Shown here in pieces: positions 1 through 55,609 of a DNA stretch of 64,000 nt. The position numbers and the translations under genes were made by a program. Positions within the stretch are counted from its first letter, which is position 1. Each line of letters opens with the position of its first letter. Below the pieces are notes generated by a model, which did no database searches, was not told the DNA's origin, and worked only from the letters and a program-made list of their open reading frames with translations. Origin of the DNA: Gracilinanus agilis (taxonomy: Eukaryota); NCBI RefSeq assembly GCF_016433145.1, contig NC_058131.1, positions 27,770,992 through 27,834,991 on the forward strand. Direction: 5' to 3'.

Positions 1-562
1 CTATGAAGAATCCATCATCTTCCCTTAAAAAAATGTTCACTCACTCATCTATTTCCAGACCAGCAGGACTGTGTATGTTGGGAGCATGCATGTGATAATA
101 TGATGTGGGGTATCATGGTTAAAGTAAACAGAAAGAGATGCTCTGCCCCATGGGGAAATGTGAATGTGACCCTGGATCATCCCTGGCATGATGTCTTCTT
201 TGTTCTGATTCCACATAATATCTGGTCTAACCTGGAGTTCATGTAGGATCCAACGTTTGCCCTCCTACAACACAGAACCTCCTCATGAATAAGCTTTCCC
301 TAATAAAATCTATTTGATTCTGATGCGGAACAGGCCCCTTTTTCTTTGGCATCACAATAACTTCTCATGAAGATGGGAGGGTCCCTCAGGATAGGTATAA
401 TCAAACAGAACCACCCAAAACTCATTGTAGACTTCTCCCACTCACCATCATTTTTTCAGGGATCATTCTTGATGGATCCTCAATGAAATAATCAAGGGTT
501 CATTTTAGTACCTTGAGATGTCCTTAATCCAAGACTGGAGATTTGAGTTTATTGAGGATACC
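1..562 (-). mobile_element. Ancient CR1/L3 LINE, RT region (3' portion of the element split by the ATG5 retrocopy)
   Basis: Minus-strand remnants LNKLKSPVLD*GHLKVL and GIRTKKTSCQG resemble the CR1 RT motifs KSPGPDxLHPRVL and GFxKxRSCxTN. Paralogous copies at ~38560-39150 and ~52350-52948. Confidence 0.6.
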
Positions 563-1623
563 TGTTATCATGAAATAAGGTAAATAATCTGAGCAGGTCA
601 AAGAAACGCAGTTTGGGTCAAAGGAATGATAAAGCGGATATTAGGGGATTATAAAGTGATTGGGGGAGGAACGAAGGAATGGGAAGGTATTTAGGAGATA
701 AAGGAAATGGGGTATGTAGGAGAGGCAGCTCAAACAGGTTTATTCCCAGAGGCTTGAGACAGGATACAGGGAGGAAACCAGGGCCAGCAAGAAATGTTAG
801 GTTTGGCTGGAGAGTTTCTCTTGTTAGTTTCAAAGTCTCTTTTGGGAGGGGTCGAGGAGGCTCCTCCCTGCCAGTCAAACTGATGCTGGAGGAAGTCTGG
901 GGGAGGTACTTCCTGCCAAGATGAATGCCCGAGTTTTCTTAAGAAATAAAAGAAAAATGATCCCTTCCCCTTGAGCCCTTGTCTTAATTTTGGACACAAT
1001 GACTCACCTCAGGGTTTGAACAGGTAACAAGGGGATTTATTCATACCAGGGTCAGTCAGGAGGGGGGAGGGGTTCAGGGTTTTCTAACTGCTGCTAGGGA
1101 GAAGGTGAGGGTGGGGGATGGGTCGTGGAGAGGTTAGACAGAGAGTCCGGCTCTCCCAGTCAGGAAGATTTGACTGCCTTTTAAGTAAGTCTTTATCAAA
1201 CTTAGGGGTAACTTATTTGAGGATACTCCAATTATGTAAAAAAAAAAAACTAAAATCACTATGTTCAATCACCAAGCCCTCCCTTCCAACCAGAACCCAA
1301 AGGAAAATCAGGGAAGGGGAGGGATGGAGATGGGAGATCAGGGAGAGGTCCAGAGAAATGAGATAGGTCCAAATTTCCCCAAAACAAAATAAGCACAGGC
1401 CAAAGCCGAAGCAATTAGGCCAAAGCCGAAAGGCCAAAGCAAAAGCCTCCAGCCACAGCGAAAGCCAGAAGGCAAAAGCCCCGTCCGTCCGTCCGTTGGA
1501 ACTTCACCTCTATTTATAGCTTTAAGTTCTGACTTTCTGAACATTCTAAGATGTTTAACTGACTTTTTTTGACTGTTAGAAATTACAGAAGCAAAAAGTT
1601 TCTGTTAGCCACCTTGCATTACA
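563..1623 (-). mobile_element. Solo LTR, 4-bp TSD TACC
   Basis: TG..CA termini (TGTTATC..GCATTACA on +), TACC at 559-562 and 1624-1627; empty sites in other units (~39135, ~52935); TATA-like (~1510) and AATAAA (~1035) on the - strand. Confidence 0.85.
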
Positions 1624-1648
1624 TACCTGAAATGTCTCTAGTCAACTT

Positions 1649-4158
<2,510 letters not shown>

Positions 4159-4551
4159 CTCTAGTCAACTTATTACATGGGATTCAACATTTTGTTGACC
4201 ACTTCCATGCTTTATCTCTATGTTCTAAAACCATTTTTCCTGGGAGACACAACAGAAGTATTTTCATATTATTTGAAGTTAGAATTATGTAAAAAAAAGG
4301 ACACAGTCTAAGCCATTACAAATCTGCAGTGCACATCTGAACTATGTGAGTACTTCACAGGATTCTTTATTCACATTGATTGGGATCTAACTGTATTTCT
4401 GTCTTGTAATATTACTCCATTCGCTCTAAGAAGTGGTCCTCCTCTTTGAGCTTTCTCTTGTTTCAAATGTAGCTTTACAAAGCACAAAGCTGTTCATGAT
4501 TGTCCTGTAAAAAATAAAAAGGTGGTTTGGCCAAAGTTGTAATCATATATA

Positions 4552-4572
4552 ATGAGAGAGAGAGAGAGAAGA

Positions 4573-4637
<65 letters not shown>
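4552..4637. repeat. (GA)n microsatellite
   Basis: Direct reading; much shorter in the paralog at ~26830. Confidence 0.95.
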
Positions 4638-4640
<3 letters not shown>

Positions 4641-4812
4641 AGACAAGAAGAGAGAAGCCCATTGTGGTCATCTCCATGTTACACTTCCACTTGCCCAGCA
4701 TCATCCCAGGAAGTCAGTCTTTTCCAGAACAGAAGTAAAAAAAGCTCTCTCCTTCCAACACTCAAATTTTAAACCCCACTAGCTCATCTCTCCTTGCTGG
4801 ACATTGCATTTT

Positions 4813-4989
4813 TTTAAACCCTTGACTTCTTTGTATTGACTTATAGGTGGAAGATTGGTAAGGGTAGGCAATGGGGGTCAAGTGACTTGCCCAGGGTCAC
4901 ACAGCTGGGAAGTGTCTGAGGCCAGATTTGAACCTAGGACCTCCTGTCTCTAGGCCTGGCTCTCAATCCACTGAGCTACCCAGCTGCCC
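4813..4989 (-). mobile_element. Opossum-type tRNA-derived SINE (SINE1_Mdo-like), 16-bp TSD
   Basis: CTGGACATTGCATTTT at 4797-4812 and 4990-5005; absent from the paralogous unit (~27025). Confidence 0.88.
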
Positions 4990-5919
4990 CTGGACATTGC
5001 ATTTTGATGCTCACAGTGACATACCTGGATATCATATTAGATATGGCATTACTCTCAACATCCATCAATAGGGTGCCTAAGGATGATGGTATTTTACTTC
5101 ACAGGGTCCCAAGAATATGTCTAAGCTTAGCCACCCTAAAATAATTCTTAGATGTCATTAATACTTTTTTTTTCTATTCATAATTAGTTATCATATTCAT
5201 TCATCTTTTATAAATGTCTTTGGAAAAGCTAATTTTGTAGTTGAACATCCTGAGTGGCAACATTAATATTTCAAACAGCTTCTCTCCTTTTCTTTTTTTA
5301 ATCAATATTGCTTGTATTTGTTCTAGAGTACATGGCATCTGTCTTGATTGAAATTCCCTAGTAGAATTGGTGGCCTTGAGATGCTATGTGTTGTTTCTCT
5401 TAAATCATTGACATTCATTCTTTCAAAATCTATGGTACAATCTGAAATGCCAAATTTTCATTTCTTTATCGATCATAAACTCTATGAAAATGTTGTTACT
5501 ACCTCTCATTATTCTCATCAATTCTTCATCAACAATCAGTTTCTCCTCATCATTCTAGTCAGAATAGGGGACTTAGAAGAGGTTCCTTTGACCTTTTAAA
5601 GAAGTTATTAGTAAGGCAAATTTTCTCATCTGTTATGATTTTGGAAGAAGGATGTCCAATATCCTGAAAATGCTCCCATCAATAGCATATTGTGATGTTG
5701 TGTCATATTTATAATCTATTTCCCAAACACAATATCTATTTCCTGTTTCCAACTCTGTGATCTGCGGTATAGTCCCACTATAGTTTTGCCTGTGATTCTC
5801 TTTCCATTGGTCATTAATCAAATGCTCCCAAGTTTGCTCCAAATTGTAAATTTATCGTAAGATTTCACCTTCTAAGTTTTCAGGGCTATACTATCACTTC
5901 TTTTATCTATTTTTTCTTT

Positions 5920-6082
5920 TTTTTTTTTAAATTTTAAACCCTTAACTTCTGGGTATTGATTTTTATAGGTGGAAGATTGGTAAGGGTAGGCAATGGGGGT
6001 CAAGTGACTTGCCCAGGGTCACACAGCTGGGAAGTGTCTGAGGCCGGATTTGAACCTAGGACCTCCTGTCTCTAGGCCTGGC
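5920..6082 (-). mobile_element. SINE1_Mdo-like, 5' truncated
   Basis: Core ..GTGACTTGCCCAGGGTCACACAGCTGGGAAGTGTCTGAGG..; flanking CTATTTTTTCTTTT repeat. Confidence 0.82.
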
Positions 6083-7941
6083 TTTACTATTTTTTCTTTT
6101 TAATTAGATTGGCCTTCCATTAGAGATTCCAAGAATGAATTACATCCCTCAGAGACTCATGGATATCATACTATTTATAAGATTTAGAGCCTATAAAGAA
6201 TTTAGTAATCATCTAGTTCATCCTTATAATGTGATTTATTGTATAAATTGAGACTTCTAAAGAGTAAGCAACTTGCCTAGTATAAATGAGACAATAAGTA
6301 CCAGAGGTAGCATCAGGATAATTATTTCTATTCAAAATCCAACCTTATTTACAAGTGGCTATAAGGTCTTGGTACAATAGGATGGTCCATAGAGGGGCAG
6401 CATAAACAGGGACCTTAGACAAGGAGTCTCTTGCGCTAGGGTTCTGTACCAGAAAGGTAATGAGGGGAGTTTCTAAGTTTTCCCAGGAGTCCACAGAGAT
6501 CAAAACAGATTTTTAGGGGCTGATGGTCCTCTATGAAAATGGTGGTAGCCAGGTTTTTGTCTGGGGGTTGGGAGGGAATGAGCAAGTGATTGTAAGCACA
6601 GGACCAAGGAGAGAGAAGGGGGGCAGAGTGGTGTCTGTGTTGGCAATGCAGCTCTCTTCTGTTGTGAAGGAAGTCCTACTGTGTGACCTCGAGGGTTCTG
6701 TCCCCAGGCTGTTGCCTTGGTCCCTGCTGATAAACAAGCATATAAATGAACTTTAACCAATATCAATTCTCTCTCCACTTGTAGCAGAGTCAAACCTTTG
6801 ACTCAGTGTCAGGTAAGGGAATATAGTAGGAGCAAAGGAATTTTCCTGTCTATAGTTTGGTTGAAAAACTTCTACACAATGGGAGTACAAGGTCCTATGC
6901 CATCCTCCCCACCCCTCCTTCAAATATCTAAGGGAACAGGAGTGATGGTTTCAGTCTTCTGTAGCTTCTTCATAGCTGATAAGGGGTGCAGAATCCCTGG
7001 GAGGAGGAGGGGAGGGCATGGGCATGGGGTCTGCGGGGTCCTGTCCATAGCAAAGGTGTAGGTCTAAAGGCTGGGAGATTTGAAGGGCGTGTCTGGCAAT
7101 CCTATGACAGGGCTGACAGGTCACCAGGGGGAGCATCAGTCTCCAAGGCAGAAGTATGGAAAATGGGCCAGCACCAGATATCTTAGCCAACAGACTCCAT
7201 CTCCTGAAAACATCCTCTGACAGGAATTTACCCTTTTAGGGAATTTGATTCTGGAGTTGTTTGCAGAGTTGACATGTGATGTTTCTGTTAAAGAATATTC
7301 TTTCGGAAAGCCCACATTTACATAGTAACAATATGTCAAAGATGAATTTCTGTACCCCAGATCTTAGAAATCCAGAAAACTTTGGGTTATTTTTCAAAAC
7401 TCAAGAGCCAAACTTTAATTGTGGCAAATCAAGGCTGCATATACAAGCCATTTATTAATAACTCTACCTAGTTCTCAAAGTATGTTCCCTAAAAATTTGA
7501 TAATTTTCAATAATTAACCTAATAGGTTGTTTGGGGAAATGGAAACCTGTATTCTTATTCAATTTGCCTTATGTGCTGAGTATGGGAATTTATCACAAAA
7601 GAGAAGGCAGACAGGGAAAACATTTCCTCACATCCCAAGGGACACATAGTGAGGGGCTTCACACCGTGGCTGGCTCATGGCATTGTTGTCTCATTCAAGG
7701 TTTAGCAGCCCAGATGGTCAGAAAAGTTCAATCCAACTTCAGCCCTCGAATCACTTCTCTAACCATCATAGGTCATTCTGTCTTATTTGTAGTTCATCAC
7801 CATTGGATCTCAGAAGCCTTCTTTTCCCTTAAAGACAAGTCTTTCCCATTACAGCTCAGAGAAATTCTACTTATCAGCAGTCTAGAAACAATTTTTCATA
7901 CTCTCAAACAAGCCTTTCACATCCCTACAAGGCTGATCACT

Positions 7942-7944
<3 letters not shown>

Positions 7945-7993
<49 letters not shown>
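7945..7993. repeat. (CA)n microsatellite
   Basis: Direct reading. Confidence 0.95.
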
Positions 7994-7996
<3 letters not shown>

Positions 7997-8239
7997 TTTG
8001 GTAATAAGGAACACAAGTGCTTAATTGAGTAGCTCCATAGTAAATATAAATAAGGGCTGTATCATCTCCTGGATCTAGGCCTAAGACAAGACCAAACAGG
8101 AATCTTTTCAGGGTAACCTTCCAGAGAAATTCCAGAAGCATTTGTGATTGATTTTTCCAAAACCACATAAATCAATTTTAGAAATATCCCTAGGTCAAAG
8201 ATCCAATTATAAAAGCAGCATTTCTATCTGTTCTGTTTC

Positions 8240-8243
<4 letters not shown>

Positions 8244-8317
<74 letters not shown>
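8244..8317. repeat. (CT)n microsatellite
   Basis: Direct reading. Confidence 0.95.
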
Positions 8318-8319
<2 letters not shown>

Positions 8320-10329
8320 CAAACCTGCATAAGCAAGTTTTATGGACCCCAGATCAAAGGTCCTCCTTCTTCCACATTCAAACACAACATACTCCTTCAC
8401 CTTCTTTGATTTGCTTTTACCATCATAAAAATGAACATTCCATTTCGTATAAATACTGTGTCTCTAGTATAGTGCTCATCAGTTATAAATTTTAGGTCAT
8501 ATTAGCAGTAATTCCCATAACAGTCATAAAATTGTGAGCAAGTGTTGTTCATCCATATGCCATTTTTAAAATCCTGCCTGTTTCTGGTCTACTATATGCA
8601 ATATATATGTTAAAACAGGTCAATATTGAATGAAAATATCAACTAATATCTGGGGGTCTCTCAAGTTACATTCTCAAGATTTGTGTGAGGCAACTCATCA
8701 ATTATATATTACTCAACACATTTTATAATTTTGGACATGGAAAGTTTGCATTAAGATTCCATAGCTTCAAACAAGCCATCTGGTGGACACAGCTGGCAAT
8801 TTTACTTCTTTGAACAGCTCCTTAAAATATTCAAATTATACAATTAAAAGATGCTTATCTGTTGTCAACTCTGAGGACATACTCATGTCCTTTGTTGGTA
8901 TTTCAGTTCCTAAATATCATTGTGGGACAATTATAAATACTATGTTCTCCTTCCTGGCTGAAGACGGGGCTAAATTATTTTTGAAACACATCCAAGTCCA
9001 AAGCAGTTTTTCTGAGGGCTGCATGGCTTGATATCTTTCCATGCCCTTTAACTCTTTAGTTACTATACTCATAAAATTTGCATGATTATTTTAAAAACCT
9101 GATAATCACTTGAAATTGGATATTAATTAAAAACTTCACAACTTCCAAAATAACTTTGATTAAAATCCCTTAACAATGTTTCCTACACACCAATTTTCCT
9201 TACAAACCTCTGCTCAAAAAAGAATAAAACTGCTAGTCTTGCCTCTTTATATCTTAGGACAATTCTACATACCTGATTAAATATTTCTTTCATATTCTGA
9301 ACTACCATTCTTATATCTTATATCCATTAACTATCTCACACATCATCTGGCTTCTCCTCTTAACTTTTAGTATAAATAGAGGGAGAGGTGACTACTATTA
9401 ACTTATATTAATAATCTACTACCAAGTCCTATTTGATTTCAGGACTGGTAAAATTTCCTTTGTGAATTAATTATATACAATTTGCATAAAAATTAATTTT
9501 CTATCCAGCATACATTTATACAATTTGTATACACCCAATATAGCATTGTAACAAACTATATGTGAGTACTTGCTAATCCTTTCAATTCATACCACATATT
9601 TTAAAAATAATTTATAAATCCTAATCAAGTACAACTCTGTATAGTCCAAATACCAAATTCTAAATACCTGTGTAAATTCACCTTACAGATCACCAAATTT
9701 AAACTCCTAAAATGTCAATGCTATTAGGTAATCAATTGTTGCTATTTTTAGACAATACAGGAAATAAAGCAACATTTCTTTTTATAAAAAATCCAAAATT
9801 AAATCTTAGAAAACATTCTCCACAATTCACTACAACCTTATCCTAATTGGAATTTATATTTATCTAGATCTTATGAAAACAATTTAGCCAGAATAGCGTT
9901 TTGCCTTTGAAAAATAAAATTCCTTCTAGGCTACAAGCTGGCTATAAATCACCTTCAAACAGTTCTCAAATTCACATTACAAAACAAAGTTGTAACCAGG
10001 AGTTTCTGTGCTCAATAAAATCTGGCTAACATTTCACCTTAACTGACAAACAATTATCACAATAAATGAAATTAAATCATAGCATACAACCATCCTTAAA
10101 TTTAATCTTAAGTGAAATATATCTCAAATTTTGGAGTAAAATCTCCCTTTTTCTGATCTGAATTTTTCTCCTTCCCCCTTGGGGGCCCATCCAAAGAAGA
10201 AAGAAGAAAATCCATTAAAGAGATATTTGCTTATATCCTCTGCTGAGGATTTTTGACTGTGGGAAGGAACTTTTAAATCCCTCCTACTCAGATTTTCTCT
10301 CTTTGCTTAGAAATTTTAATATCATTTCT

Positions 10330-11118
10330 GCTATGCAAAATGGAAAGCAGGATGATTGACACTCAGTAGTTTAGAATTTGGAGCCACCAAGTTTGCCATG
10401 AGCCAGCAAGGGACAGACAATTGAGGGCTGACTATATATAAAGCTGAAATTTGAACAAGAAGCGCTCTCAATTTGGAGAAGGGGATTTCTGGTGGGAGGT
10501 TGGTTGGGATCTTGGGTAGGCCAAATCAATCCAGGATACCTGCATTCACTATCACATCCTCACCTGCTGTGTGAAGCTGTGCTGTATATCCTAGTCGATT
10601 GATCATCAAGGAAGAAGCAACATCAATTCCATAAAATAATCTGGTTCAAGTCAAGCAGCCTGGCTAGCCAGGTTGCAACTGAGGAGATGAATCTCTCCAG
10701 CTGATAAGCTCAACCTGATTACCTTCAATTGACAACACCTGATCTTTAGTAATTTAGATAAGCTTTCCTTCACCCCTCTTTCCCTTAGTCCAGTGGTTTC
10801 CAAACTCTTTTGGCCTCCCGCCCCCTTTCCAGAAAAAATATGACTTATCCCCCTGGAAATTAATTTTTTAAAATTTTAATAGCAATTAATAGGAAAGATA
10901 AATGCACCTGCGTCCATCACCACCTCCCTGGATCACTGCAGCACCCAGCAGGGGGCGGTGGCGCCCACTTTGGGAATCACTGCCCTTAGTACCTATTACC
11001 CTTTCCCTAAGTTTATTGTTATTAATTTCTAAACTTACTTAGGTGATTGTCATCATTACCTTAAGGATCAATAACATAGCCTTGGGAATCTGAGGGAAGA
11101 GGGATTACCCAAATTACA
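10330..11118 (+). mobile_element. LTR-like segment nested in the ERV (left end uncertain)
   Basis: TATATATAAAG at ~10433, ends ..AAATTACA; no TSD confirmed. Confidence 0.3.
10791..10982. mobile_element. Non-autonomous hAT MITE
   Basis: TIRs CAGTGGTTTCCAAA / TTTGGGAATCACTG; 8-bp repeat CCCTTAGT at 10782-10789 and 10983-10990. Confidence 0.8.
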
Positions 11119-13325
11119 GTTAAGTCAAGGTCAATAGCATCATCCATCAGCTTTGAAGCCAGGATAAGCAATCACAGAAGTTGTGTGATCCAACCCACAG
11201 CCTCTTTATTTGATCACTTATTCCTGGGACGCTGTTATGTTGGGGCTGGATGTTTAGTTTAGCTACAAATATTCCTGTGGTGTTCATCTAGGGATTCCAC
11301 TCTCACTCAGCTTCAGGCGCTCATATCATCAGAGGACCTTGGGCCATCTTATCATCAATATTACAGTCCCATCTCAGCAACATAACAAAACCTGCTGCTG
11401 GAACAAGCACAGCTTTTCCAAGAATGACCATAAATCTGCACCCATCCCAGGTCCTACCTGACATAAGGGCAGTTGGGAGGTCATGACTGTTTTCTTTTCA
11501 GGCTGATTTATGGCCATTTTTCCTTGAGCCTGACTGAAATCCTGGGTATAAGGATAAGGGGTGCCCTGCCCAGTATGAAACAGGCTAGTTGTGGAAGGGG
11601 CCCCTGTTGGGAGGAGGGGTACAGAGGGCTTAATGGGGGTGCCAATGGTGAACATGGGGATCTGGAGAAGAGGATGGGGAGGGTGGGGAGGATGCGGGGT
11701 ATAGGTTCCCCATTGACATAGGGGGTTGGCTCTTTCAGGGTCTCCTTGGAGCACAGGAGGAGGAGGATTGTTCTCCAGGAGACCTGCTCTTATCTCCTCA
11801 GGAGAGTGGGTTGGCTAGCACAGCAGCCTTTGATTTAGTAGCTGAAAAATTTTAAGAATACATATTAGTGGGGTCTGATAGTCCAATGTTGAGGACTGAC
11901 CCATTATAGTAAATCACACAAAGACAAGGTTCCAACAGACATCCACAAGACACACATTAATTACGCACTCATCCACTTGAGCCTTTATAGCGACCTGAAG
12001 TTCCAAGAGACATTTCAATATGGAACCGGGCTGGGGGCTTAATGCTGTGTCCAGTGGCTCACCAGCCTTGACTGGATCCAGATTCTCAGAATAGATCTCT
12101 GGAGTGAAAACAGATCTTTTATGCCAATATCAGCACTCCTAGGCACAGAGCCTCCTAGCTCTGAGAGCGAATACCAGAACAGAGCTCCCAGGTAACAACC
12201 TGGGGAGTGAAAACAGCACTCCCAGAATACCCTTAGAGCAGTACCAGAACTCCAGGTTAACAACACCTTAAGGCAAACTAGATCATAACTCTAGAGCAGA
12301 ACAGATTACCGAACAGATGGCTCCAATAGCTATCAAAATTTGTCCAGGATCTCAAATACCAGAAGCAGGCATGGGCTCCGGAGAAGCCACCATTCACTTT
12401 CTCAGCAAAAAAAAAAAAAAACAAAACAAAACACCCTCAAAGGGGATAAGGGTTTGAGACTCCTTCACAGGCTCCAACTTAGCGAGCCCAGATATCTCTC
12501 CCCAACCCAAGCACACTCGCTCTTTCACAGCAGCCCTCTCCTAAGTCCTTACCTCCCAGTTCTGGTCCTCAAGATCTCGCTGGGGGGCTCCATCTGAAGT
12601 GAGGTACCTCAGATGACAAGTCCAGACACCCAGGAGTTCAATTAATGGAACCAATAATTATTTATTAATCTATTGATTAATAAACATACCTAGCTGGCCA
12701 GGACAACCTTCCTAGTGAAGGCTGCCCCGAACTGAAATGAAAATGCAGTTTTTAAAGGGTTCAAGATACAAAGAAAATGTTCATAAATGATATATAACCT
12801 TGAGGAACCAGCAGGAACCCTTATCGTTGTCTGGAAGTTATTTTTGCTCAGTAGAGTGGGCTTTGGGACTTCCCCTGTATATCTTATCCTGGACTGTGAA
12901 GTAGTAAAGGGAGTCACCTTCTCATGGATCTTGACTGAGACAACCTTCACAGAAAAAGCTCATTTCTGATTTTTACTTTTCCCCGGGGAAAAATAGGTTT
13001 TGCTGGACAATGACTTAGTTTACCTCACTTCTAGTGCTTGGCACAAGGTAGATACTATATAAATGTTTATTTCTTTCTCTTTCTTTTCTTTTCCCTTTTT
13101 CTTCCTCCCTGTGTCCTCCTTCATCCTAGAAGCTTCCTGAGTCTGTTTCCCTTCCCATTAGCCCAGAGAGTGCAAATTATGTCTCTTATATTAGACTCAG
13201 AGCTTTTAGATGGATGAAACCTGGGTCCTGAAACCATACTGGTAGCCAAGAGCTGCTGGAGGACTTGTTTTCCTACACAGCTCCATAATCTCTATCTGCT
13301 CCTCCTCTCAGTTCCCTAGACTCAC

Positions 13326-13409
13326 CTGTCTAAGTCTTCCTTAGAGCTAACATGCTAGGATAAGCAGCCAGGACAGGAGCGATCCTTTCCACATTTTCTA
13401 ACTCTCCAT
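13326..13409 (-). pseudogene. Decayed leader exon of an inverted, divergent paralog of the array genes
   Basis: Minus strand gives MES*KMWKGSLLSWLLILA/LALRKT*T followed by G|GTGAGTCTAG, versus MECQRSWRWLFLAGIFIMEVFALRKTQA followed by G|GTAAGTCTAG (gene 2). 84 nt vs 85 nt, two stops, one frameshift. Flanking promoter and intron motifs also align. Confidence 0.75.
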
Positions 13410-13610
13410 CTTGTTTACCAGAAGGCTCTGGGAATTGTTTTTTTTTTTTTTAAATACAAAGGAGTTTGTGGAAGCAACAGTTCCTCAATCATTTTCTCCA
13501 GGGAAAGTCTAAAAGGGAAATAAGGTCCCTCCCTGTACACACAATGTCTCCTATGCCTCACTCTCATCCCTTTTAGAATTCTTTCTGCCAAGGTACTGTT
13601 CTTTTAACAT

Positions 13611-13817
13611 TGTTACTATTTGGTTGAGTTGTGTACAACTCTTTAGGACCCCATTTGGGGTTTTCTTGGCAAAGATACTGGAGGGGTTTGTCATTTTCTT
13701 TTCCAGCTCACTTTACAGATAAGGAAACTGAGGCAAATAAGGCCTGAAGACTGATTTGAACTCAGGTCTTCCTAACTAGACCTGATGCTCCATCTCTTGT
13801 GCCATTTGGCTGCCCCT
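13611..13817 (-). mobile_element. MAR1/MIR-type marsupial SINE
   Basis: GACCCCATTTGGGGTTTTCTTGGCAAAGATACTGG and ACAGATAAGGAAACTGAGGC cores. Confidence 0.75.
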
Positions 13818-14029
13818 CTTAGGATTACCGGCTGGCAAATATAATGCTAGGGAGAACCTGTCCCAGAAAAGTAGGCATAAAATTGGAAGGAAAATGGAGA
13901 CTGTCATGAAACTTTTACTGACTCCTTTAGAAACTGTCCATTCTGATTTTTCACAGATACTGAAACATCTGTGGAATCATTGCAGATAGCATTATGGGCA
14001 TGCATTCAAAAAGGCACCTATTGACTTTC

Positions 14030-14430: not shown

Positions 14431-15154
14431 ATCCTGGACCTTCCTATGATCTAACTAATCAAGACATACAAAATAAACACACACAACAGACAGGAAGCTC
14501 AGATGTGATGATGGACGTATCTGGGGTTATTGTTATTACTGAGTTCGATGAGAAATCTGAGATGGAAGAGATCACTTTCCTGGGAAAGAATGGAGCTCAG
14601 GGAAAGTTTCATGGAGTTGGGGGAAATATATTGGATGGAGATTGAGGATACATGCATTTCAGGTACTTGGATGAGGAAGTGGGATCAAAAGCAGAACAGG
14701 GATGAGTCAGGGTGAGGGAAAGGGAAATAGAATAGTATTAAGTGAAATTGCCATAGAAATCACATTTCAGTAGAATACCACAAAGCCCTCCATTAAGGAA
14801 GGCCTCCAACATCTTAAGTGAAACCTTTGCCATAAAATGATGGAAGGACATGGACAAGAGTCATACAAGATGGTTAGGAATGGACAGGCTAAGATAAAAT
14901 CATTAAAATGATCACCAGAATTGATGAGATCACAAAATAACTTGAATATTTAAGACAGGATCATGCATTTATACATATTCAGTCACAATGATGAGTGACA
15001 GAAGATTTTGGGTTTTGTTTTAATTAGAGGTAGTTTCTTTTTGAACAATCACGTCATCTTTCAGCGCAGTATGAAATGTAAAGGATAATTTTTTTAAATG
15101 ACTCTTTTGGAAGGATTTTCTTTATATTTAAGGTCATGCTGGTAAATATTTATC

Positions 15155-16554
15155 AATTAACTCTCAAAAATATGTACAGTTTCCAGTTTCATTTGCACTC
15201 TTAACCTTTTCTCCAACAATTTGTTAAGTCTAGACAATCTAAAAATAATCAAGTCCTGCTTTGTGTGCACCAGTTTCAGAGATACGAAGGCTCTCACTGA
15301 GAATGTAACAATGGGCTTGCTTTCCCAGTAAGATGGTTCCAGTCCAGCGTACTCTTGCTTATACCAAAGATTCACAAGTCTAGGTACTGTCTATCTGTCC
15401 ATTTTGAATGAGGAGTGACATCACCAAAGTAGCATAAAAGGAAAGTTTTACAGTCAGTGATGTGAAGCTTGAATTGGAAAAGGGATTGAAATGGAAGTAG
15501 GAAGACAAGTTAGGAGCCTATTCTAATAATTATGTGGGAAGAGACAAGAATTTGGAGAAAGGAGATTGAAGTAGGTGATTGAGGGAAAAGCCTGGAAGCA
15601 AGAGATATTGTGTAAGTAGAAGGAGTAAGTATCTGTCACCTAATTGGCTATATGAGGTTATGAAGAGGAAAGAAGAACATAAGACTCTAAATTATAAGCC
15701 TTTCAGACCGAGAAGATGAGAATCAATTGATAAACACTTATCACTGCTGTTCGGTCATGTCATCTATTTTTGACTCTCCACAATCCAATTTGAGATTTTC
15801 TTGGCAGAGATATTGGAGTACTTGGTCATTTCCTTCTCTAGTTTGTTTTCAAGATGAGGAAACTCAGGCCAGCAGGAGCTAATTGACTTACCCAGGATCA
15901 CATTTGACCAGGGTCTGATGCCAGATGTGAACTCAGCAAAAGGAGTCTTCCTGACATCAGGTCTGGCATTTCTCCATCTTGCCACCTAGCTGCCATACTA
16001 TGTGTCAGGCATTCTTCTAAATGCTAGAAATTAGGGAGAGGGGCAAGGAATGCTTTGGGAGAAAGATTAATTAAGACTTCACTTTAAGGCAGAGTGAAGT
16101 TTTGTTCATGGTGGGACAAATGGAGAAATTTCCACAAGAGAGTTATGAATAGAGGACTTTGAGCTCTGGGAAATTGAATGTATAACCAAGACTTCCAGGG
16201 TCACATGCATGGAGATTGATAACTGAAGCCCAGGGATAAAGGTAAGTTAACACTTTCCAGAACCAGTGCCCTTAGGTCCAAATCCCAGGGAAGGGAATAG
16301 ACTCAGACTCAGGGATGAACAAGGATGTTACACCTCCCAGTCATAATGATAATGATAAAAGCCAGACACACAGATGGTGAGCCTACAAACACTGCAATAT
16401 GCCACCCAGGATTCAGTGCCCTGGTCCTGGCAGTCATCCAGGGGCCACATTGGGCTTGATTATTTTTAGGTTGTCTAGACTTAACAAGTTGTTGGAGAAA
16501 AGGGTAAGAGTGCAGATGAAACTGGAAACTGTACATATTTTTTGAGAGTTAATT
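15155..16554. repeat. ~102-bp inverted repeat pair (15155-15256 and 16452-16554)
   Basis: By-hand alignment: 5 substitutions and 1 indel; both arms absent upstream of genes 2-4. Confidence 0.88.
15740..15995 (-). mobile_element. MAR1/MIR-type marsupial SINE (older)
   Basis: TTTTCTTGGCAGAGATATTGGAG, GATGAGGAAACTCAGG, CCACCTAGCTGCC. Confidence 0.65.
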
Positions 16555-17118
16555 AATTAATAATTAATCAGCATGGAAAGGCAATGTGGAATAGGATCAA
16601 GAATATCAACAGACCTAACATTAGTATGGCTTCTCTTTGAATTCTTCCTTAGACTTTTGCTAGTTTCACTCTAGGAAAGTACTTTAACCTCTCTTGGACT
16701 CAGTTTCCTTGTCTGAAAAATGAGGATGGATAATAGTGCCTGTTTGTGCCCCACAGGATTATTGTGACAAACAAGTGAGATAATAATAAACGGGAAGTCC
16801 TTTGCCTACCTTAGAAGGTTGTATTCACTGTTATTATTATTATTAAGGGCATATTTTCAGACAGGTAGCTCCATTAAAAACCGCCCCATAAAATCAGGGG
16901 GTCCCTGAGAGCAGGATAAAAGGAGCAATGGGGCCTCTTCCTATTTCTCCCCTTCAGAATGAAATCTCCCTTCAGATAGAATAATGTCTAGGTCCAACTA
17001 ACACTTAGGAATGACAACTGGATGGTTGGCACTGAAACAACCAGTCCATCTTGGGGCTTGCCAGAAAGTACCTGATGATGACTGTGCTCTGAGGTGCTCT
17101 CGTCTCACCACAGACTCT

Positions 17119-17135: not shown

Positions 17136-17373
17136 ATGTCTGCTGAGCAGGGAACGTTTCAGCCTGGTAGCAGGCATCTTAGATGACATTGAGAAGAGGG
17201 CAGGGTCTAAGCAGAGCCAACCCCATCCTGGGTAGGGTTAGAGGATAAAAAGCCATGTTATATAGATGGGAGACCTCAGTTCCCTTTTAGGTGCTGCCTG
17301 AGGCTGTGTGGCATCTAAAGCTTCCCCAGCTGTGGTGTGCTTGATGAAGCCAGGCAGTCCCCTTCCGTGGGCT

Positions 17374-20300
17374 ATGGAGTGTCAAAGGAGCTGGAGATGG
17401 CTCTTTTTAGCTGGGATTTTCATTATGGAAGTATTTGCCTTGAGAAAGACACAGGCAGGTAAGTTTTGAAAGAAGGGAGTTCAGTAGACAGTGTAGAGAC
17501 AATGGAACTTTTGGTCTGTTGGGGAAAACTTATTCATTCCCTTCAAAAGGCTTGGGGTAAAGCAGTCAGTTAACAAACATTTATTCAGTATATTTGTTAA
17601 TTAATTATTAGTAAGCATATCTTTAAGCATAATTTTTGGTGTACTCCAGAGAAAATGCAAGGTACTGGGGATACCACCCACCACCAAAACAACAACAACA
17701 ACAACAACAACAACAAAAACAGAAAAAACATAGTCGCTACCTAAAAGGAGCTCATGCTCTAAAAGGGAGAGAGAACATGAAAATTAAAAAATAACAAGAT
17801 ATATCTAAAGGAGATGAAAAATAACAGAAAAAATCTAACAATTGTAGCCCATGATGGAATGTTTGGTGTGAAGGATGGTAAATGGGCCAATTTGACTGAA
17901 ATTTTAAATGCATGAAGGAGAGGACTAGGAATAGAACCTAGAAAGGAAGATGGGAATCAGAATAGGAATGACTTTAAATGCCATTAGCTGCCAAAGTTTG
18001 TATTTCATCATAGAAGAAGTAGGGAACCACTAAAGTTCTTTGGAGATACAGTGTAGTGTGCTTTAGGAATAGAAAACTGGGGAGGACTAATTGGAGAAGG
18101 GAGAATTCAAAAGAAGGAAGCCCATTTAGGAGGAAATTGCCAAAATCCTGGTGAGGGGGAATAAGGGCCTGAAGTAGGGTGAGGGATGTGTGAATGGAAA
18201 GAAAAAAAGAGAAATTTGAGAGAGGAGCTGAAGGTAAATTATTTGGGCTTGGCCAATGGTCAGATATTGGGGAAGGAGAGAAAAGGGGAAGATTTGAGAA
18301 TTGATCTGAGATTACAAACTTGGATGATTAGGATATTTGTGCTGTTGCTGGAAAAAATAGAAAGTAAGTGAGAAGCATGGGTTTAGAAAGAAGTGAATGA
18401 CTTACATTTTTGACATACTGAGTTTCAAATATCTACAAGCAATCTAATTGGAGAGGTCTGAAAGGAAAGGTTTTTAAATAAGCATCTACTAATCCTCTAT
18501 TATGCAGTAGATACTGTAATAAAACCCTATAAATACCTCCTTTCAGTACCAATAGAACCCTAAGGGGTCAGTGTCTTTACTATTCTCATTTTATGGATAA
18601 GGAAACTCAGGTTTAAAGAGCTTTCGTGATTTATTTGCCCAGGCTCATACAACTTAAATGTCCAAAAACAGATTTGAACTACAAACCCTGCACTCTATCC
18701 ACTGCACAAATTAGATGATAGTCTTGGAGCTCAAAAGAAAGAGTCTAAGAGTTGGATATGTAAATTTTGGAGTCATCTGTTTAGTTACATTTAATAAGGG
18801 TGGGAGAAAGAGAAAGGGAAAAGAAATGGCTGAGAGGAGGCTCTGGTTCTCTGGTATCCCCAAACCTGAAACATTATTTTCTCTTCTTCTCTTCCTTCCT
18901 ATAATTCAGTCCACCACAGACATGAGATTCAATTCATCACAGTGGGTACAGGCCACTCTATCTTGGAACTAAGCGAATTTAGCCTCATAGATGATGTTGA
19001 AGTGGCATCTTATAACAAAGGACAGAAGCAAATTACTATCAAGATACCCTGGATCTCCAAAGTACTGGGAGTCAATTATCTCACACAGGTGCATGATTTA
19101 TTGGTGAAGCATGAACCACATTTCCTCTGGCTACTCCAATTCTTAGCACAACATGACATCAACGATGATAGTAAGTTAGATCAACTAATTTTCCCCCATC
19201 CTGTTTTTCAACATATTTTATTTCTCTCCCAAGCCCAGCACATCAAAGGATCCCAGTAGATCATATAACTGAGACAAATTTCTTTGGTCCCAACCCACTC
19301 TATCCTTCTCTGGAGAAAGAGCTATGAAGGATCCAGCCCTGGCCCTTAGGCTTGTATCATCCATGTTTCTGTGATGCAGTTTGAACATGGATGATACAGG
19401 CTTCACCCAGTTGGATTAACATCCAGGATCCCCATCTCCTATTATCCTTTTAAGATATTTCTACCTTCTGCCAGTGAATTTAATTTCTTAATCAATAAAT
19501 CTAAACTCTGAGAATAAAGTCCTGCGCTCACCTACAGTCATGGAAGTTAAAAAAGTGCTGCAGTCCATCCTAGTTACCGATCTCTCTCTTCATCTAGATT
19601 TCAGACATTAGTTCTAGCACCACCTCCTTTCATTATCTTTTACTCCTGCAATTACAACACACAACAGATACACCAAAGCAGTAATTTTCTGGGTTTTGTT
19701 TGAAAGGAAAGAAAATACCCAAATTCAGATATAAATTGTCCATAGATCTTTAAGAGCAAAAAAGTGCACTAAAAATTTGGGGATGCACCACATAACATAA
19801 CAGTTCAAACTGTACATAGTAGAAATGGACATAGACCCAGGATGAAGAGAATGTAAGTCCGAAGTTAGTCTACCCTACCTGAGTTTCCTGTGATTCTCTG
19901 GAGACAGTCTGACTTGATTGTGAGCCACAAGATAATTTAACCTAAACCATAACCCAATGTTTTTAAAAAGGGAAAATCCTTTTCATACATCTCCCCCAAA
20001 GATGGGCTCCTCCTTTGGGTTCCCTGTCCTCTTTCCACCCATAAAAACCCAACTCTGTGTTCCTCCACAGGAAACCACACAGCCCAAAACCTGATAGAAT
20101 GTGAAGTGGACAATAATATCACAGTAAAGAGTCACATTCATTTAATTTTGGATGGGGAGGAAAGTTCCCGGATAGATGAAGAGGTTGGGCATTGGGAGAA
20201 CATAAAGCCTGAAGCCAAGCAATACCAATACATTCTGGAGAGTCCCTTCTGGACCAATCTAAGGAAAAGCTACATGAAGCTATATTGTGTTGACTTGATG

Positions 20301-30021: not shown

Positions 30022-30216
30022 GAGTGGTTCCCAAACTTTTTTGGCCTACCACCCCCTTTCCAGAAAAAATATTACTTAGCACCCCCTGTCACATACTATC
30101 ACTGCCCCCTTACAGTTATTCACCGCCCCCAAATGCACCTGTGGTCATCACCGCCCCAGCCCTGGATTGCTGGAGCACCCACCAGGGGGCAGTGGCGCCC
30201 ACTTTGGAAATCATTA
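30022..30216. mobile_element. Non-autonomous hAT MITE, same terminal family as 10791-10982
   Basis: Shares both ends (GTGGTTCCCAAACTTTTTTGGCCTACC.. and ..CAGGGGGCAGTGGCGCCCACTTTGG) with a different interior; TSD decayed. Confidence 0.72.
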
Positions 30217-32680
30217 TAAATTGAGTCAATATTTGTCACAATTCCAATAGCCAGCAATGTGACAGAAATGACAGTTATTATATGTTAGAGGAGATGAAAA
30301 TTCATCTCCTCTGCTAGGCCTTCTTATTTTCAAAGTTTCTTACTCAGTGTTGCTTAGAAGCTAAGATTTATCATAATGGCATCAATTAAAATATTACATT
30401 TAAATTTTTATGAATCAGTGGTATATCCAGTAATCATGGACAATTTTTAAACTGTGGAAATGCCGTAGCCTTTTGCTTACTATTTATTGATTCAGTTCTC
30501 AAGGATTTGTTGAGGTTTCTATCTGCAGTATGTAGATTTCTCATTTTTCTGTCCATAAAAGACAGAGAGCAGCTAATGCTCCCATTTTGTTGATGTGGTT
30601 GTCATCTTATTCTCTCTTTTCTAGGGGAGTTTATGAAGAAATTATCCTGGGACAAATCACCATCCTTCTATCGTTCTATTATTATTGTTGTTATTTTCAA
30701 TATTATTATGCATATTATTAACATTAATAAGAAATTTAGTTGCAACTGTTTCAAGAAAGGTTTCTGGGGTACCTGGCAGGGAGAGCACATAGGTCAAATA
30801 GATTCTAAAATTGAGGAGCCTTAGTCATATTTAGGATTTCAGATTCTGAGATCCGAAGTGACCCTGCTTGAAATCAGGAAGTCAAATGAAATGTCTTCTC
30901 AAGTCTCACTTCTCAGCAGTGTGCGGATTCTCTGAAAATTTCTCTACTTGTTTAGGAAAAACCATGAAGTACAATGAATGAAGGTATAAACGTGTCACTT
31001 CAGCTTCTCAACATTGAGTCAATACTTAGCACAATTCCAGTAGTAGAATACAAAAGATAATAGTGAAGGATGTGAGTTGGGATGAGTAGGAAGAAAATCA
31101 AGGAAAATCAGCTCCTTTGGGAAGCAGCAAATATATATAGGTTTGTCTCAGTGTTAGTCATTTCAGAACTCTCATTAACATGGTGAATGGCTGGATTGGT
31201 ATGGGATGTGAGGAAGATCAACCTGAAGAGTTTGATTAACAGGTAATAACTCCATCCTCCGTACAACTTCCTAATACAAATTGATTTTCCCAATGCTCAG
31301 GTCCCACTATGTGACTTCTCTGTTTAACAAAATCCTGGACCTTCCTATGATCTAACTAATCAGGACCTACAAAATAAGCACACAATAGACAACAGGAACC
31401 TTAGGTGAGATGATGGGAGCATCTGGGGTTGTCGTTATTGCAGAGCTTGATGAGAAATCAGAGGAAGAAGAGCTCACGTTCCTGGAGTTCAGGGGAAGTT
31501 TAGGGGAGGTAGGGGCATTTGACTTATATCTTAAAAAAGGGAACTAGAATGGATGGAGTTTGAGGATCCATGTATTTTAGGCACGTGGATGAGGAAGTGG
31601 GATGAAAAGCAGAGTTAGGATAAGTCAGAATGAGAAAAGGGGAAACCAGATAGAATACAGTAGAATTGCCAAGGTATGTGGAAATCACATTTCAGTAAAA
31701 TACCACAAAGCCCTCCATTAAAGGAAGGCCTCCAACACCTTGAGGGGAACCTTTGCCATAAAGTGTTGGAAGCATGTGGTCAAGAGTCATACAGGGTGGT
31801 TAGATTATGATCAAATCATTAAAAAGAGCCCCAGAATGGATGAGATCACAAATTAATTTGACCATCTGAGACAGGATTGTGCATTTATACATTCACAGTC
31901 ACCATGATGAGTGACAGAAGATTTTAGGCTTTATTTTAATTAGAGGTGGGTTCTACTTAAACAATCTTGTCACCTTTTAGTACAGGCAATGAAAACTAGT
32001 CACAGTCACAATAATAAAAGCCAGACACACAGATGGCCAGCATACAAACACTGCGATATGCCACCCAAGATTCAGTGGCCGGGTTCTGGCAGTCATCCTG
32101 GGGCCACGTTGAGAGGAAATCACAATTAATCAGCATGGAAAGGCAATGTGGAATAGGATCAAGAATGTCAACAGACCTAGTGTTAGTATGACTTCTCTTT
32201 GAATTCTTCTTTAGACTTCACCCTGAGAGTCTTTTTTCTTGAGAAGTAATTTAACCTCTCTTGGACTCAGTTTCCTCATCTGGAAAATGAGGATGAACAA
32301 TAGTACCTACTCCTGCACCACAGCAATATTGTGACAATCAAGTGAGATAATAATAAATGTGAAGGCCTCTGCCACCTTAATAGGGTATATTCACGGTTGT
32401 TTCTGTTAATAGCATATTTTCAGATAGGTAGCTCCATTAAAAACTGCCCCATAAAATCAGGGGCTCCCTGAGATCCAGACGAAAGGAGAAATGGGACCAC
32501 TTCCCTATTTCTCCCCTCAGGAATGAAAACTCCTAGTGTTCCCCTTCAGATATAACAATTTCTAGAATTTAGGAATGACAACAGGAAGGCTGACCTTGAA
32601 ACAACCAGTCAATGTCAGGGCCTCCCAGAAAGAGCCTGATGGTGACTGTGCTCGGAGGCTCTCTCCCCTCACCTCTGACT

Positions 32681-32935: not shown

Positions 32936-35900
32936 ATGGAGTGTAGAAGGAGCTGGAGATGGTTCTTCTCAGCCGGGTTTCTCATTATGGAAGTATTTGC
33001 CTTGAGAAAGACACAGGCAGGTAAGTCTAGAGAGAAGAGGGTTCAGTAGACAGTGTAGAGACAATGGAGCTTTGGGTCTGATGGGGAAAACTTATTCATT
33101 CCCTTCGAAGAGCAGACAGTCCGTCAAAAATATTTAATAAGCATATTTGTTGGTTAATTATTATTAAGCATATTATTAAGCATAAAAGCATACTAAGCAT
33201 AACTGTTATAGTACAGGAAAAATGCTACATACTGGGGACACCATGACCAAAAAAAATAATAATGAAATGAAACATAGTCTCCGCCTAAAAGGAGCTCATG
33301 CTCTAAAAGGAAGAGGCAACACGTAAATAAATATAACATCTAGAGGAGATGAAATGTAACTTTGGAAGGGAAAACAATAGTGACCTCAGGGTTGAATAAA
33401 TGTTTGGTGTGCAGGATGGTAAGTGGGACAATTTAACAAAAATGTTGAGTGTATGAAAATAGACTAAAAAGGAAGACTGAATCAGAATGTGAATGACTTT
33501 AAAGGCCATTAGCTGCCAAAGATTGCATTTTATCCTAGAGGCAGTAGGGAAGCACTAAAGTTCTTTGGAGATGGAGTGTAGTGTGCTTTGGGAATAGGAA
33601 AATGGGAAGATTGGGGAGGACTGATTGGAGACGGAAAAATTCAAAAGAAGGAAATCCATTGAGGAGTAAATTGCCAAAATCCTGGTGAGAGGGAATGAGG
33701 GTTGAACTAGAGGGTGGGATGTGTGAATGAAAAGAAAAAGAGAGAGATTTGAGAGAGGAGCAGGAGGTGGAATTAGTTGGGCTTGGCTGCTGATCAGATA
33801 TTGGGGAAGGACAGAAAGAGGTAGGATATGAGAAAGGATCTGAGATTGAAAATATAGATGATTAGAATATTAGTGCGGTTCTTGACAAAAATAGAAAGTT
33901 AGTGAGAAGCAGAGGTTTAGAGAGAAGCTAATGACATATTTTTGACATACTGAGTTTCAAATACCTAAAAGCAATCTAATTGGAGATGTCTAAAAGGAAA
34001 GAGTTTTTAATAAGCATTTATTAATCCCTTATTATGCAGCAGGTACTGTAATAAGTCCCTTATAAATACCTCCTTTGAGTACCAATAGAATCCTAAGGAG
34101 TCAGTGTATTTATTATTCTCATTTTATGGATAAGGAAACTCAGGTTTAAAGAGCTTACGTGATTTATTTACCCAGGATCATACAGTGCAAATGTCTGAGT
34201 CTAGATTGGAACTCATCTTTATAACAACAATTCCAGCCCTCTATCCACTGCACCAACTAGTGGATAATAAATAGGCTCAAAAGAAAGAGACTAAGAGTTG
34301 GATATATAAATTTTGGAGTCATCTGTTAAACTACATTTAATATGGGTGGGAAACAGAGAAAGGGGAAAAATGGCTGAGGAGACTCTGGTCCTCTGGTATC
34401 CCCAAACCTGAAACACCATTTTCTCTTCTTCTCTTCCTTCCTATAATTCAGTCCACCACAGGCATGAGCTTCAGTCCACCACAGTGGGTACAATCCACTC
34501 TGTCTTGGAACTAAGTGCAATTACCCTCATAGATGATGTTGAAGTGGCATCTTATAATAAAGGACAGAAGCAAATTACTATCAAGATACCCTGGATCCCC
34601 AAAGTACTGGGAGAAAATTATCTTACTCAGAGCCATAATTCACTGGTGAAACACGAGCAAGATTTCCTCTGGCCAATACAGTTCTTAGCACAGCATGACA
34701 TCAACCATGATAGTAAGTTAGATCAGCTCATTTTCCCCCATCCTGTTTTTCAACGTACTTTGTCTGTTTCTCTCCCAAGATCCAAGGATCCCAGTAGATC
34801 GTACCACTGAGGCAAATTTCTTTGGTCTCAACCCTCTCTATCCTTCTCTCAGGAAAGAGCTATGAAGGATCCAGCCCTGGGCCAAAGGTTTCACCCAGTT
34901 GGATTAACATCCAGGATCACCATCTCCTATTATCCTTTTAAGAGACTTCTACCTTCTGCCCAGTGACTTTCACTGCCTGCCAAAATTTCTTAATCAATAA
35001 ACCTGAACATAAAGGCCCGTGCTCTCCTTCAGTCCCAGAGGTTAGAAATGTCCATCCTAGTTACTGATCTCTCTCTTCTTCTGGATTTCAGACATTAGTT
35101 CTAGCACCAGCTCCTTTCATTATCTTTTACTCCTGCAATTACACACAACAGAACCACCTCAACAACAAGGCTCTATTTTCTGGGGGGTTTTGAAAGGAAA
35201 GAGAATACCCAAATTCAGATATAAATTTTATGTAGACCTTAAAAAGCAAAAAAATGCACTAAGAATTTGGGAATGCACTGCATAATATGACAGTTCAAAC
35301 TGGATGAAGTAGAAATGGACATAGACCAAGAATGAAGAGAATCTAACTCCAAAGTTATTGTCTACTCTACCTGAATTTCCTGTGATTCTCTGGAGACAAT
35401 TTGCCCAAACTATAAGTAACCCCCAATGTTTTTAAAAAAGGAAAATCCCCTTTCTACATCTCCTCCACAGATGGGTTCCTCTTTTGGATTCTCTGTCCCC
35501 TTTTCAACTAGAGGAGCCCAACTCTATGTTCCTCCACAGGAAACCACACAGTCCAGCTTCTGGCAGAATGTGAAGTGTACAATGACATCACAGTAAAGAG
35601 TCACATCCATTTAATTTGGAATGGAGAGGAAAGTTACAGGCTAGATGAAGAGGTTGGACATTGGGAGAACATAAATCCTGAAGTCAAGCAATACCCATAC
35701 ATTCTGCAGAGTCCCCTCTGGACCAATCTAACAAAATACTACATGAAGGTATATTGTGTTGACTTGATGAGGAAAATCGTTGGATATTCAAGCTTAAAAG
35801 AAAATGGTGAGTGTTTTCTTCTTTCATCTCCTCCTTAAAGGTCTAGGTCACCTCCATAATTCAATGCAGTCACTGGAGTCCCAGAGAAAGAGGCAGGAAC

Positions 35901-45105: not shown

Positions 45106-45471
45106 AAAAATGAGGATGAATAATAGTACCTACTTCAATACCACAGTAATATTGTGACAATCAAGTGAGATAATAATAAATGTGAAGTCCTTTGCCAATG
45201 TTAGAAGGGTATATTCACTGTTATTTAACAGAAATAACATTAACAGAATAGCATATTTTCAGACAGGTAGCTCCATTAAAAACTGCCCCATAAAAGCAGG
45301 GGTTCCCTGAGAGCAGAATGAAAGGAGAAATGGGGCCTCTTCCTTATCTCTCTCCTCCAGGAGGAAGTATCTCTGGTGTTTTCTTTCATATATAACAATT
45401 TCTAGGTTCAGCTAACACTTCTGAATGACAACTGGATGGTTGGCACTGAAACAACCAGTCCATCTCTGGAC

Positions 45472-46385
45472 TGTAGGATTAGGTAAACTGTAAGATGTCA
45501 GAGGTCAGTAGCAATGAAGTCTCCCTAATCCTTGGTCTTTAGAGAAACACACACACACAGGCAGGCTTGACTGAATGGGAGGGGCTGGAGCTTGTGGAAG
45601 TGCTCCTTCACCTCCCCCCTCCCATTTAGCAGTTGGAAATCAGTTAACAGTTTGGTAATGGTGGACAATCTGGCTTGATAACTTCTTGGCCAAAATGGTA
45701 AGTAGGGAAAGGCGAAACTCCTTATGACGATATCTTTCTCTGAATTATTTCCCTGCAGGATGATAGAATTGGTGAAGCTTGATGTCTTAGAAACTCACTG
45801 GCTCAGAGGCTAGGATCAATTTCAGAGCTACAAGTAGGAGGAACTTGGCTTATGGAGGTTGTGAGTATATCCCCAAAATATCTATATCCAGACAATGTTC
45901 CTAGTTGATAAAGGTTTAATGGTATCAGGAAATGGGAAGGGGGAATTAGGATTGATAGGTAAGGAAAAACTACCTAAACAGGTATGTCAAAAGCAGCCCC
46001 TCCCCTCAAAAGGGGAAATGTATCTTAATTGGCTGATCTCTCTAAGCCTCTAAATATTCTTCTTCTAAACCTAGATAGCTAAACTAAGGTAGTCTGTGGT
46101 ATTGTTTGAAGGTCTAACAAAAGTAAAACAGCTTTGGCTGTCAGAGACTGAATGGCTCAGCTCAGAGCTTTGCCCCTCTGCTCAGATCCAAGAGCAGAGA
46201 CAGCACTCAGATCAGGATCAGGACCCAGGACCCAAGACCTAGGACCCAAGACTCTGCAAGCAGGATGATCTGCCTTTTTATACCAGGACTCCAACTGTCT
46301 TTAACTGCCCCCTCTCTTAGAGTTCTGGGGGGCACTATGGAATTCTGTGCTGCAGCTTGAACCCCTCTCAGCAATACGGATCCCA
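45472..46385 (-). mobile_element. Solo LTR in the gene 3 proximal upstream region, 6-bp TSD C(T/C)GGAC
   Basis: TGTAGGAT..GATCCCA termini; TSD at 45466-45471 and 46386-46391; absent in genes 1, 2 and 4; TATAAAAA on the - strand at ~46277. Confidence 0.82.
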
Positions 46386-55137: not shown

Positions 55138-55355
55138 TCCTCCTCGTCCTCCTCGTCCTCCTCGTCCTCCTCGTCCTCCTCGTCCTCCTTGTCCTCCTGG
55201 TCCTCGTCCTCGTCCTCCTCGTCCTCCTCGTCCTCCTCGTCCTCCTCGTCCTCCTCGTCCTCCTCGTCCTCGTCCTCCTCGTCCTCCTCGTCCTCCTCGT
55301 CCTCGTCCTCCTCGTCCTCCTCGTCCTCCTCGTCCTCCTCGTCCTCCTCGTCCTC
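55138..55355. repeat. (TCCTCCTCG)n compound tandem repeat running into an assembly gap
   Basis: Direct reading; Ns follow at 55356. Confidence 0.95.
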
Positions 55356-55560: not shown

Positions 55561-55609
55561 CTTTCCTGTATATTTTATGATTATTTATTGAAATAAAGGA
55601 TCACAAGGG

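Follow-up and report, generated by a model that had tools for sequence, protein, structure and literature searches.

An inverted, decayed relic of a UT gene start upstream of a tandem array of MHC class I-like genes in Gracilinanus agilis

Organization of the locus

The window considered here is a stretch of 64,000 nucleotides of the Gracilinanus agilis genome (RefSeq assembly GCF_016433145.1, contig NC_058131.1), whose positions are numbered from its first letter. It contains four UT (MHC class I-like) genes arranged in tandem on the plus strand, with leader ATG positions at 17374, 32936, 46710 and 59770, and exons for alpha1, alpha2, alpha3 (C1-set) and the transmembrane region (TM) are present in each of them. 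In gene 3, the canonical leader ATG has been lost, positions 46710-46715 reading ACTGGG where the other genes have ATGGAG or ATGGGG. All four genes carry an IRF/RUNX-like promoter block (ACCACAG...GTTTCACTTCC) at about -268 to -240. At the left edge of the window, positions 1-6369 correspond to the 3' flank of another plus-strand gene located before the window.

UT genes are MHC class I-like and make up a family known from marsupials and monotremes (Papenfuss et al., 2015, PMC4509613; Krasnec et al., 2016, PMC5101759). Three observations place genes 1-4 within this family. The core of the forward primers published for exon 2 of ModoUT5/UT6 (Table 1, PMC5101759) is matched exactly about 45 nt upstream of the alpha1 exon in all four genes. 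A profile made from the four alpha2 exons and run against 1.8 billion representative proteins returned 17 proteins, and those looked up were all marsupial or platypus class I-like proteins, including one from Monodelphis deposited as 'MHC class I antigen'. Finally, the leader and alpha3 of gene 1 are 100% identical to the G. agilis RefSeq model P0057. Together, the primer-core matches, the alpha2 search and the identity to P0057 identify genes 1-4 as the G. agilis equivalents of UT3-6, a group within the UT family of marsupials (PMC4509613, PMC5101759). Regarding the start of translation, P0057 begins at an in-frame ATG at 17344, 30 nt upstream of the 17374 ATG of gene 1 (region 17344-17457), giving a leader of 38 residues (MKPGSPLPWA-MECQ...); the relic described below has no counterpart of this upstream ATG.

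Several other features of the array were recorded along the way. Unit 3 has a second copy of the family upstream region (-450 to -300) at 45326-45472 (75.8 bits, E 2e-23), which precedes the copy next to gene 3 by ~0.9 kb; an insertion has therefore split or duplicated the promoter-distal region of this unit. Upstream of gene 1, in the spacer, two inverted repeats (15135-15256 and 16452-16575), 91% identical, lie on either side of an insert specific to unit 1 (~15064-16339) and are probably two oppositely oriented SINE copies. The spacer between genes 3 and 4 contains an assembly gap (N run, 55356-55560) within a long CTG/GCT-type trinucleotide repeat (55080-55600).

A decayed gene start on the minus strand

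In the spacer between the upstream UT gene and the first of the four UT3-6-type genes, the minus strand from 13909 to 13276 is collinear with UT gene positions -268 to intron +55. This inverted relic, which is absent from the annotation, is located ~3.4 kb upstream of the promoter of gene 1 and ~4 kb upstream of gene 1 itself, and is directed away from it. An earlier note on this DNA had described here a hidden inverted paralog, with decayed promoter, leader exon and intron start, and had given it an extent of 12960-13910; the extent had to be reduced to 13276-13909, as 12960-13275 has no alignment to the family.

At its 5' end (~-268), the relic starts with a decayed promoter module of the IRF (ISRE/ETS-IRF) and RUNX-like type (13849-13909, minus strand; columns 183-247 of the family profile presented in the next section). 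This 61-nt block, which begins at minus 13909, aligns without gaps to genes 1, 3 and 4 with 40-41 identities out of 61, the next best match in the window reaching 32/61. The 24/34-nt ungapped match to the PU.1-IRF region, first reported in the earlier note, was recovered with the same count, and the longer block also includes a decayed RUNX-like half. Both halves are mutated, the RUNX-like ACCACA having become ATGACA and the GTTTCACTTCC core ATTTTCCTTCC.

Downstream of this module, a 204-bp SINE is inserted in the relic promoter in the same orientation as the relic (13616-13819, minus strand). Using nhmmer, it matches a copy at 15999-15747 (E 4e-14), by which its limits were set, and four shorter copies in the window; we take it to be a MIR/MAR1-type element. 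The core-promoter motif (GACCT..TTCCCTTTTAG) follows at 13529-13499 of the minus strand, at the distance from the ATG seen in the genes (~90-120 nt upstream). For the block to which it belongs (-110 to -1), no other non-self match in the window scores better (7.6 bits, E 0.18), and both strand and distance are as expected. The IRF block and the core motif are 316 nt apart in the relic and 112 nt apart without the SINE, for 101 nt in the genes, so that the prediction of a family-like distance after removal of the SINE held true.

The leader (signal-peptide) exon relic occupies 13326-13409 of the minus strand (84 nt). Its ATG is kept (13409-13407), its last base is at 13326 and it is followed by a consensus donor GT at 13325-13324, which is the phase-1 donor position of the family, as had been proposed. 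A residue-for-residue alignment of this exon with the family leader (MES*KMWK..LALRKT*T) had also been claimed: its position is right, though the exon measures 84 nt against 85 nt in the genes and a switch of frame after codon 19 is needed to maintain the alignment. Intron 1 is represented by 13276-13325 (minus strand), its initial ~50 nt with the donor (GTGAGT). This segment includes the motif TAGAGA..ATGGAGCT, which is identical at 16 of 19 positions and bears out the alignment of the intron start. The best-preserved parts of the relic are the ATG context, the consensus donor CAG/GTGAGT and the core-promoter motif. With a leader of ~28 codons ending at a phase-1 donor and the promoter layout of the family, both present in spite of degenerate motifs, the segment has the make-up of a UT pseudogene fragment.

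Strength of the similarity

A family profile was built from the four genes, from -450 to +300, and run unfiltered against the window on both strands. It retrieved the minus strand from 13529 to 13276 with 15.9 bits (E 2.9e-5), the next non-self match having -0.9 bits; beyond the gene starts, the relic and the partial promoter duplicate at 45326-45472 were the only notable matches. The search that had been suggested, with a profile of family exon 1 plus promoter, is hence positive. As a control, 150 windows were shuffled in 500-base blocks with dinucleotides preserved, and the best of them scored 9.0 bits, well under the relic. When the SINE was excised in silico, the score of the relic rose from 15.9 to 27-31 bits, with one continuous alignment over profile columns 183-590.

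The leader exon deserves caution. In comparison with genes 1-4, the exon-only block has 38 ungapped identities out of 85, chance matches in the window reach 38-44, and an exon-only profile leaves the relic unranked. The leader match to the neighboring genes, being at background, is therefore no evidence by itself, and this is the one observation that speaks for a chance similarity. The exon taken together with the first 70 nt of the intron reaches 18.5 bits (E 5e-5). Moreover, the IRF/RUNX, core-promoter and exon plus intron-start blocks are collinear on one strand at the spacing of the family, and each of them is the best non-self match in the window. Used reciprocally as a query, the relic aligns over its whole length with the four gene starts (E 1e-12 to 3e-14), and no other match in the window has E <0.39. 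Finally, an independent leader profile made without any sequence of the window also picks the relic leader (see below). With three ordered blocks, shuffled scores below that of the relic and these two further searches, coincidence is ruled out as an explanation. One weak exon-like match, on the plus strand at 30277-30333, lacks ATG, donor and leader-like frame and was dropped as a chance match.

Another way to account for the similarity would be that the relic is a copy of a dispersed repeat which also supplied the promoter and first exon of the UT genes. As regards known repeats, only the internal 204 bp correspond to a SINE, and the remainder has no copies in the 64-kb window other than the four gene starts. 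In addition, the exon encodes a UT-type signal peptide common to marsupials and platypus, which indicates that it has long been a component of a gene and did not come from a mobile element of recent date. Given the search of these 64 kb, this origin is very improbable. The three other spacers of the window contain no counterpart of the relic either, so that, at the scale of the 64 kb, the earlier statement that it survives only in this unit stands.

A dead start without a gene body

With X at the breaks, the relic leader reads MESxKMWKGSLLSWLLILAxLALRKTxT. Its lesions are a TAG at codon 4 (13400-13398), a 1-nt deletion after codon 19 and, in the shifted frame, a TAG at codon 27 (13332-13330); the unshifted frame has further stops at 13349-13347 and 13343-13341. 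Both TAG stops fall at positions occupied by glutamine in the family. Regarding what would make a functional UT member, the relic has neither alpha1-alpha3 exons nor an open reading frame. Two TAG stops and a frameshift, together with degenerate IRF/RUNX sites, the SINE within its promoter and the lack of downstream exons, make it, as far as its sequence tells, a dead gene start. Because promoter and intron sequences flank the exon, the relic is a duplicated copy and not a retrotransposed one; a processed pseudogene, which was also considered, is excluded by the presence of the promoter and of the intron start, collinear with the exon.

Residual use of the relic might nevertheless be imagined: it could provide a non-coding transcript, divergent or antisense, with its promoter and first exon, or influence gene 1 through what is left of an IRF/ETS-binding element. 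The ATG context, the donor CAG/GTGAGT and the core-promoter motif being the best-kept parts would be in line with such a role. However, the IRF and RUNX-like cores are mutated, the SINE separates the upstream module from the core promoter, and the overall identity is close to what is expected from unconstrained decay. We consequently regard present use as quite improbable.

Remnants of the gene body were looked for in three ways. Besides tblastn, the DNA was searched with a profile of the entire 6-kb gene, and all 5079 stop-free six-frame pieces were searched with a profile built from 32 full-length UT proteins. Outside genes 1-4, none of alpha1, alpha2, alpha3 or TM was found, including on either strand of 1-13300, and the rest of the gene was equally missing up to 13950. 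Compared with the leader, the alpha3 exon has greater length and stronger conservation, yet it is absent, which implies that the gene body is physically missing and not merely decayed.

This result bears on the alternative of a complete inverted UT gene, once standing head-to-head with the array, whose body from intron 1 onward was later deleted or replaced by insertions. The stretch from the relic to the flank of the upstream gene (6369-13276) is 7 kb long, more than twice the other spacers, and differs from them in sequence, so that there has been turnover in that region. In line with this alternative, the relic also fades past intron +55 with no recognizable second junction. Against a complete gene, alpha3 should have outlasted the leader, and both strands of 1-13300 are devoid of any trace of alpha1, alpha2, alpha3 or TM; moreover, the sharp junction on the promoter side, described hereafter, requires at least one rearrangement break within the 5' region of the gene. 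A complete inverted gene is thus possible, but we consider it doubtful. The earlier reading of the relic as an older, inverted copy is supported: the inversion is observed and the leader core supports its age (see below). Only a 5' fragment is present, so that a whole paralog is unproven.

The junction and the surrounding spacer

Position 13907 (equivalent to 43292 and 57652) is the point where the homology of unit 1 to units 3 and 4 begins. To the left of it, units 3 and 4 still match each other and unit 1 does not, the loss being sharp in the three-unit alignment. The relic alignment ends at this same breakpoint, with ~3 nt (TGA/TCA) common to both alignments, so that self-comparison and the three-unit alignment place the junction between the relic 5' end and the start of unit homology at 13907-13909. 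As the relic 5' end coincides with a sharp breakpoint of unit homology, it was presumably cut at ~-268 by a rearrangement junction. On the other side, beyond intron +55, the relic passes gradually into unalignable sequence.

The spacer bearing the relic (6369-13907) is 7.5 kb long, more than twice the size of the other three, and is unrelated to them save for a weak match of ~190 bp. This match, between 10792-10979 and 30023-30213 (73%, plus strand), is the sole similarity of the gene 0-1 spacer to the gene 1-2 spacer and may be what is left of an ancestral spacer or an old repeat shared by both. Between the relic and the flank of the upstream gene, the minus strand at 11370-12750 had the appearance of what we presumed to be a retroviral leader and gag start (MGQSS..., a proline-rich stretch, PLCQVGPG...W.F). 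This candidate remnant (11.2-12.75 kb, minus) was rejected, as neither an LTR pair nor any Pfam or PDB hit was found for it.

Age of the relic

Over ~403 aligned columns, the relic is equidistant from genes 1-4, with 52-54% identity to each of them (Kimura ~0.78), whereas the genes are 88-93% identical to one another (Kimura distance 0.08-0.14). That the genes differ far less among themselves than the relic does from them, as proposed earlier, is thereby confirmed. As a dead copy drifts while live promoters are constrained, divergence alone cannot fix the order of events, and the leader peptide has to be considered.

Leaders of Monodelphis, Dromiciops, Trichosurus, Notamacropus, Petaurus, Phascolarctos, Sarcophilus, Sminthopsis and platypus were used for comparison. 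A leader profile built from UT proteins of other loci and species, and devoid of any window sequence, matched the central stop-free piece of the relic, 13397-13350 (minus strand), with 14.5 bits (E 0.006 among 5079 six-frame pieces), for 16.4 bits for the gene 1 leader. The relic ranked after the four real leaders and a piece of gene 3 intron 1 (47491-47607); these E-values are rough, since this probably spurious match is of similar strength. The intron piece (RGDRGEFSSAWMLV; E 0.004) has neither an ATG nor an ALRKTQA-type end and is probably due to chance. The intron around it (also ~18078-18386, 33608-33920 and 60492-60803) is 79-87% conserved among the four genes, and the piece is no more conserved than intron 1.

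When the leaders are aligned in register across 28 positions, the relic has W7, the length of 28 residues and ALRKT in common with the UT3-7-type clade. Its hydrophobic core, SWLLIL, is kept in nearly all other marsupial UT leaders (Monodelphis, Dromiciops, wallaby, possum, devil), while the leaders of genes 1-4 have in common a derived core, AG[IF][FL]IMEV, at its place. Identity of the relic leader is best with a wallaby leader (13/25) and, at 10/25, not much lower with gene 1; against 30 UT leaders compared in register, it is 9-13/25 for 26 and 3-7 for the other four. Placing the relic in a tree by its leader was given up, 28 residues being too few and the ranking flat (mostly 9-13/25). Regarding the core motif, a recent copy of genes 1-4 would need to have reverted to the ancestral sequence; it is simpler that the relic split off before the present leader of the four genes arose. 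We thus infer that it likely predates the local four-gene amplification.

Origin and significance of the relic

Taken together, these observations are very probably explained by a non-processed, truncated and inverted 5'-end pseudogene fragment of a UT gene, produced by a rearrangement that preceded the amplification and now drifting neutrally without function. Its source would have been the 5' end of a UT gene, comprising the promoter from ~-268, the leader exon of 28 codons, the donor and ~50 nt of intron 1. During the growth of the cluster, an old rearrangement would have left this first 0.4 kb of a gene inverted beside the present unit 1, either by an inverted partial duplication or by an inversion with one break at ~-268 of the promoter, and the junction still visible at 13907-13909 would be its trace. 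Since then, the relic would have undergone neutral drift, with no present function to be expected.

More far-reaching interpretations can be envisioned. The relic and the 13907-13909 junction might together be the scar of the rearrangement that founded the UT3-6 sub-array, through an inverted duplication at the edge of its first unit, or the start and donor of the relic might drive a divergent non-coding transcript influencing gene 1. We deem this unlikely; if true, the relic would regulate, or provide a dated marker for, a class I cluster that is specific to marsupials and located at an evolutionary chromosome breakpoint. Under the preferred reading of a functionless pseudogene fragment, it is a small, datable marker of the growth of the UT cluster, which suggests that a UT gene start with an ancestral-type leader sat inverted at this place before its neighbors amplified and changed their signal peptide. 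Should the relic occur at the equivalent position in other didelphids such as Monodelphis, the orthology of the UT7/UT6 boundary would be anchored by it, which would help to order the duplications. It has no evident bearing on the function of UT proteins. The published searches for UT genes used models of the alpha1, alpha2, Ig and C-terminal domains (PMC4509613), and a fragment limited to a leader is consequently undetectable by such surveys.

In comparison with the UT family itself (ModoUT3-6 group), the relic has the same promoter module, 28-codon leader, phase-1 donor and intron start. It differs by its inverted orientation, by its stops and frameshift, by its low identity (52-54%) and by the lack of alpha1, alpha2, alpha3 and TM. 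The IRF/RUNX block of the UT genes is the outermost aligned part of the relic; there, both halves of it are mutated and a SINE lies between the block and the core promoter.

Finally, the human MHC contains short, truncated, non-processed HLA class I pseudogene fragments among its tandem units, which are non-functional and mark the history of duplication. The relic is likewise non-processed, partial, non-functional and left among tandem duplication units, and it is in this respect an ordinary pseudogene fragment, a known kind of object in class I regions. The HLA fragments belong to the classical MHC of a placental mammal, whereas the relic is part of the UT cluster, a cluster with no linkage to the MHC, and consists of a promoter and leader end only, inverted and located at a unit boundary.
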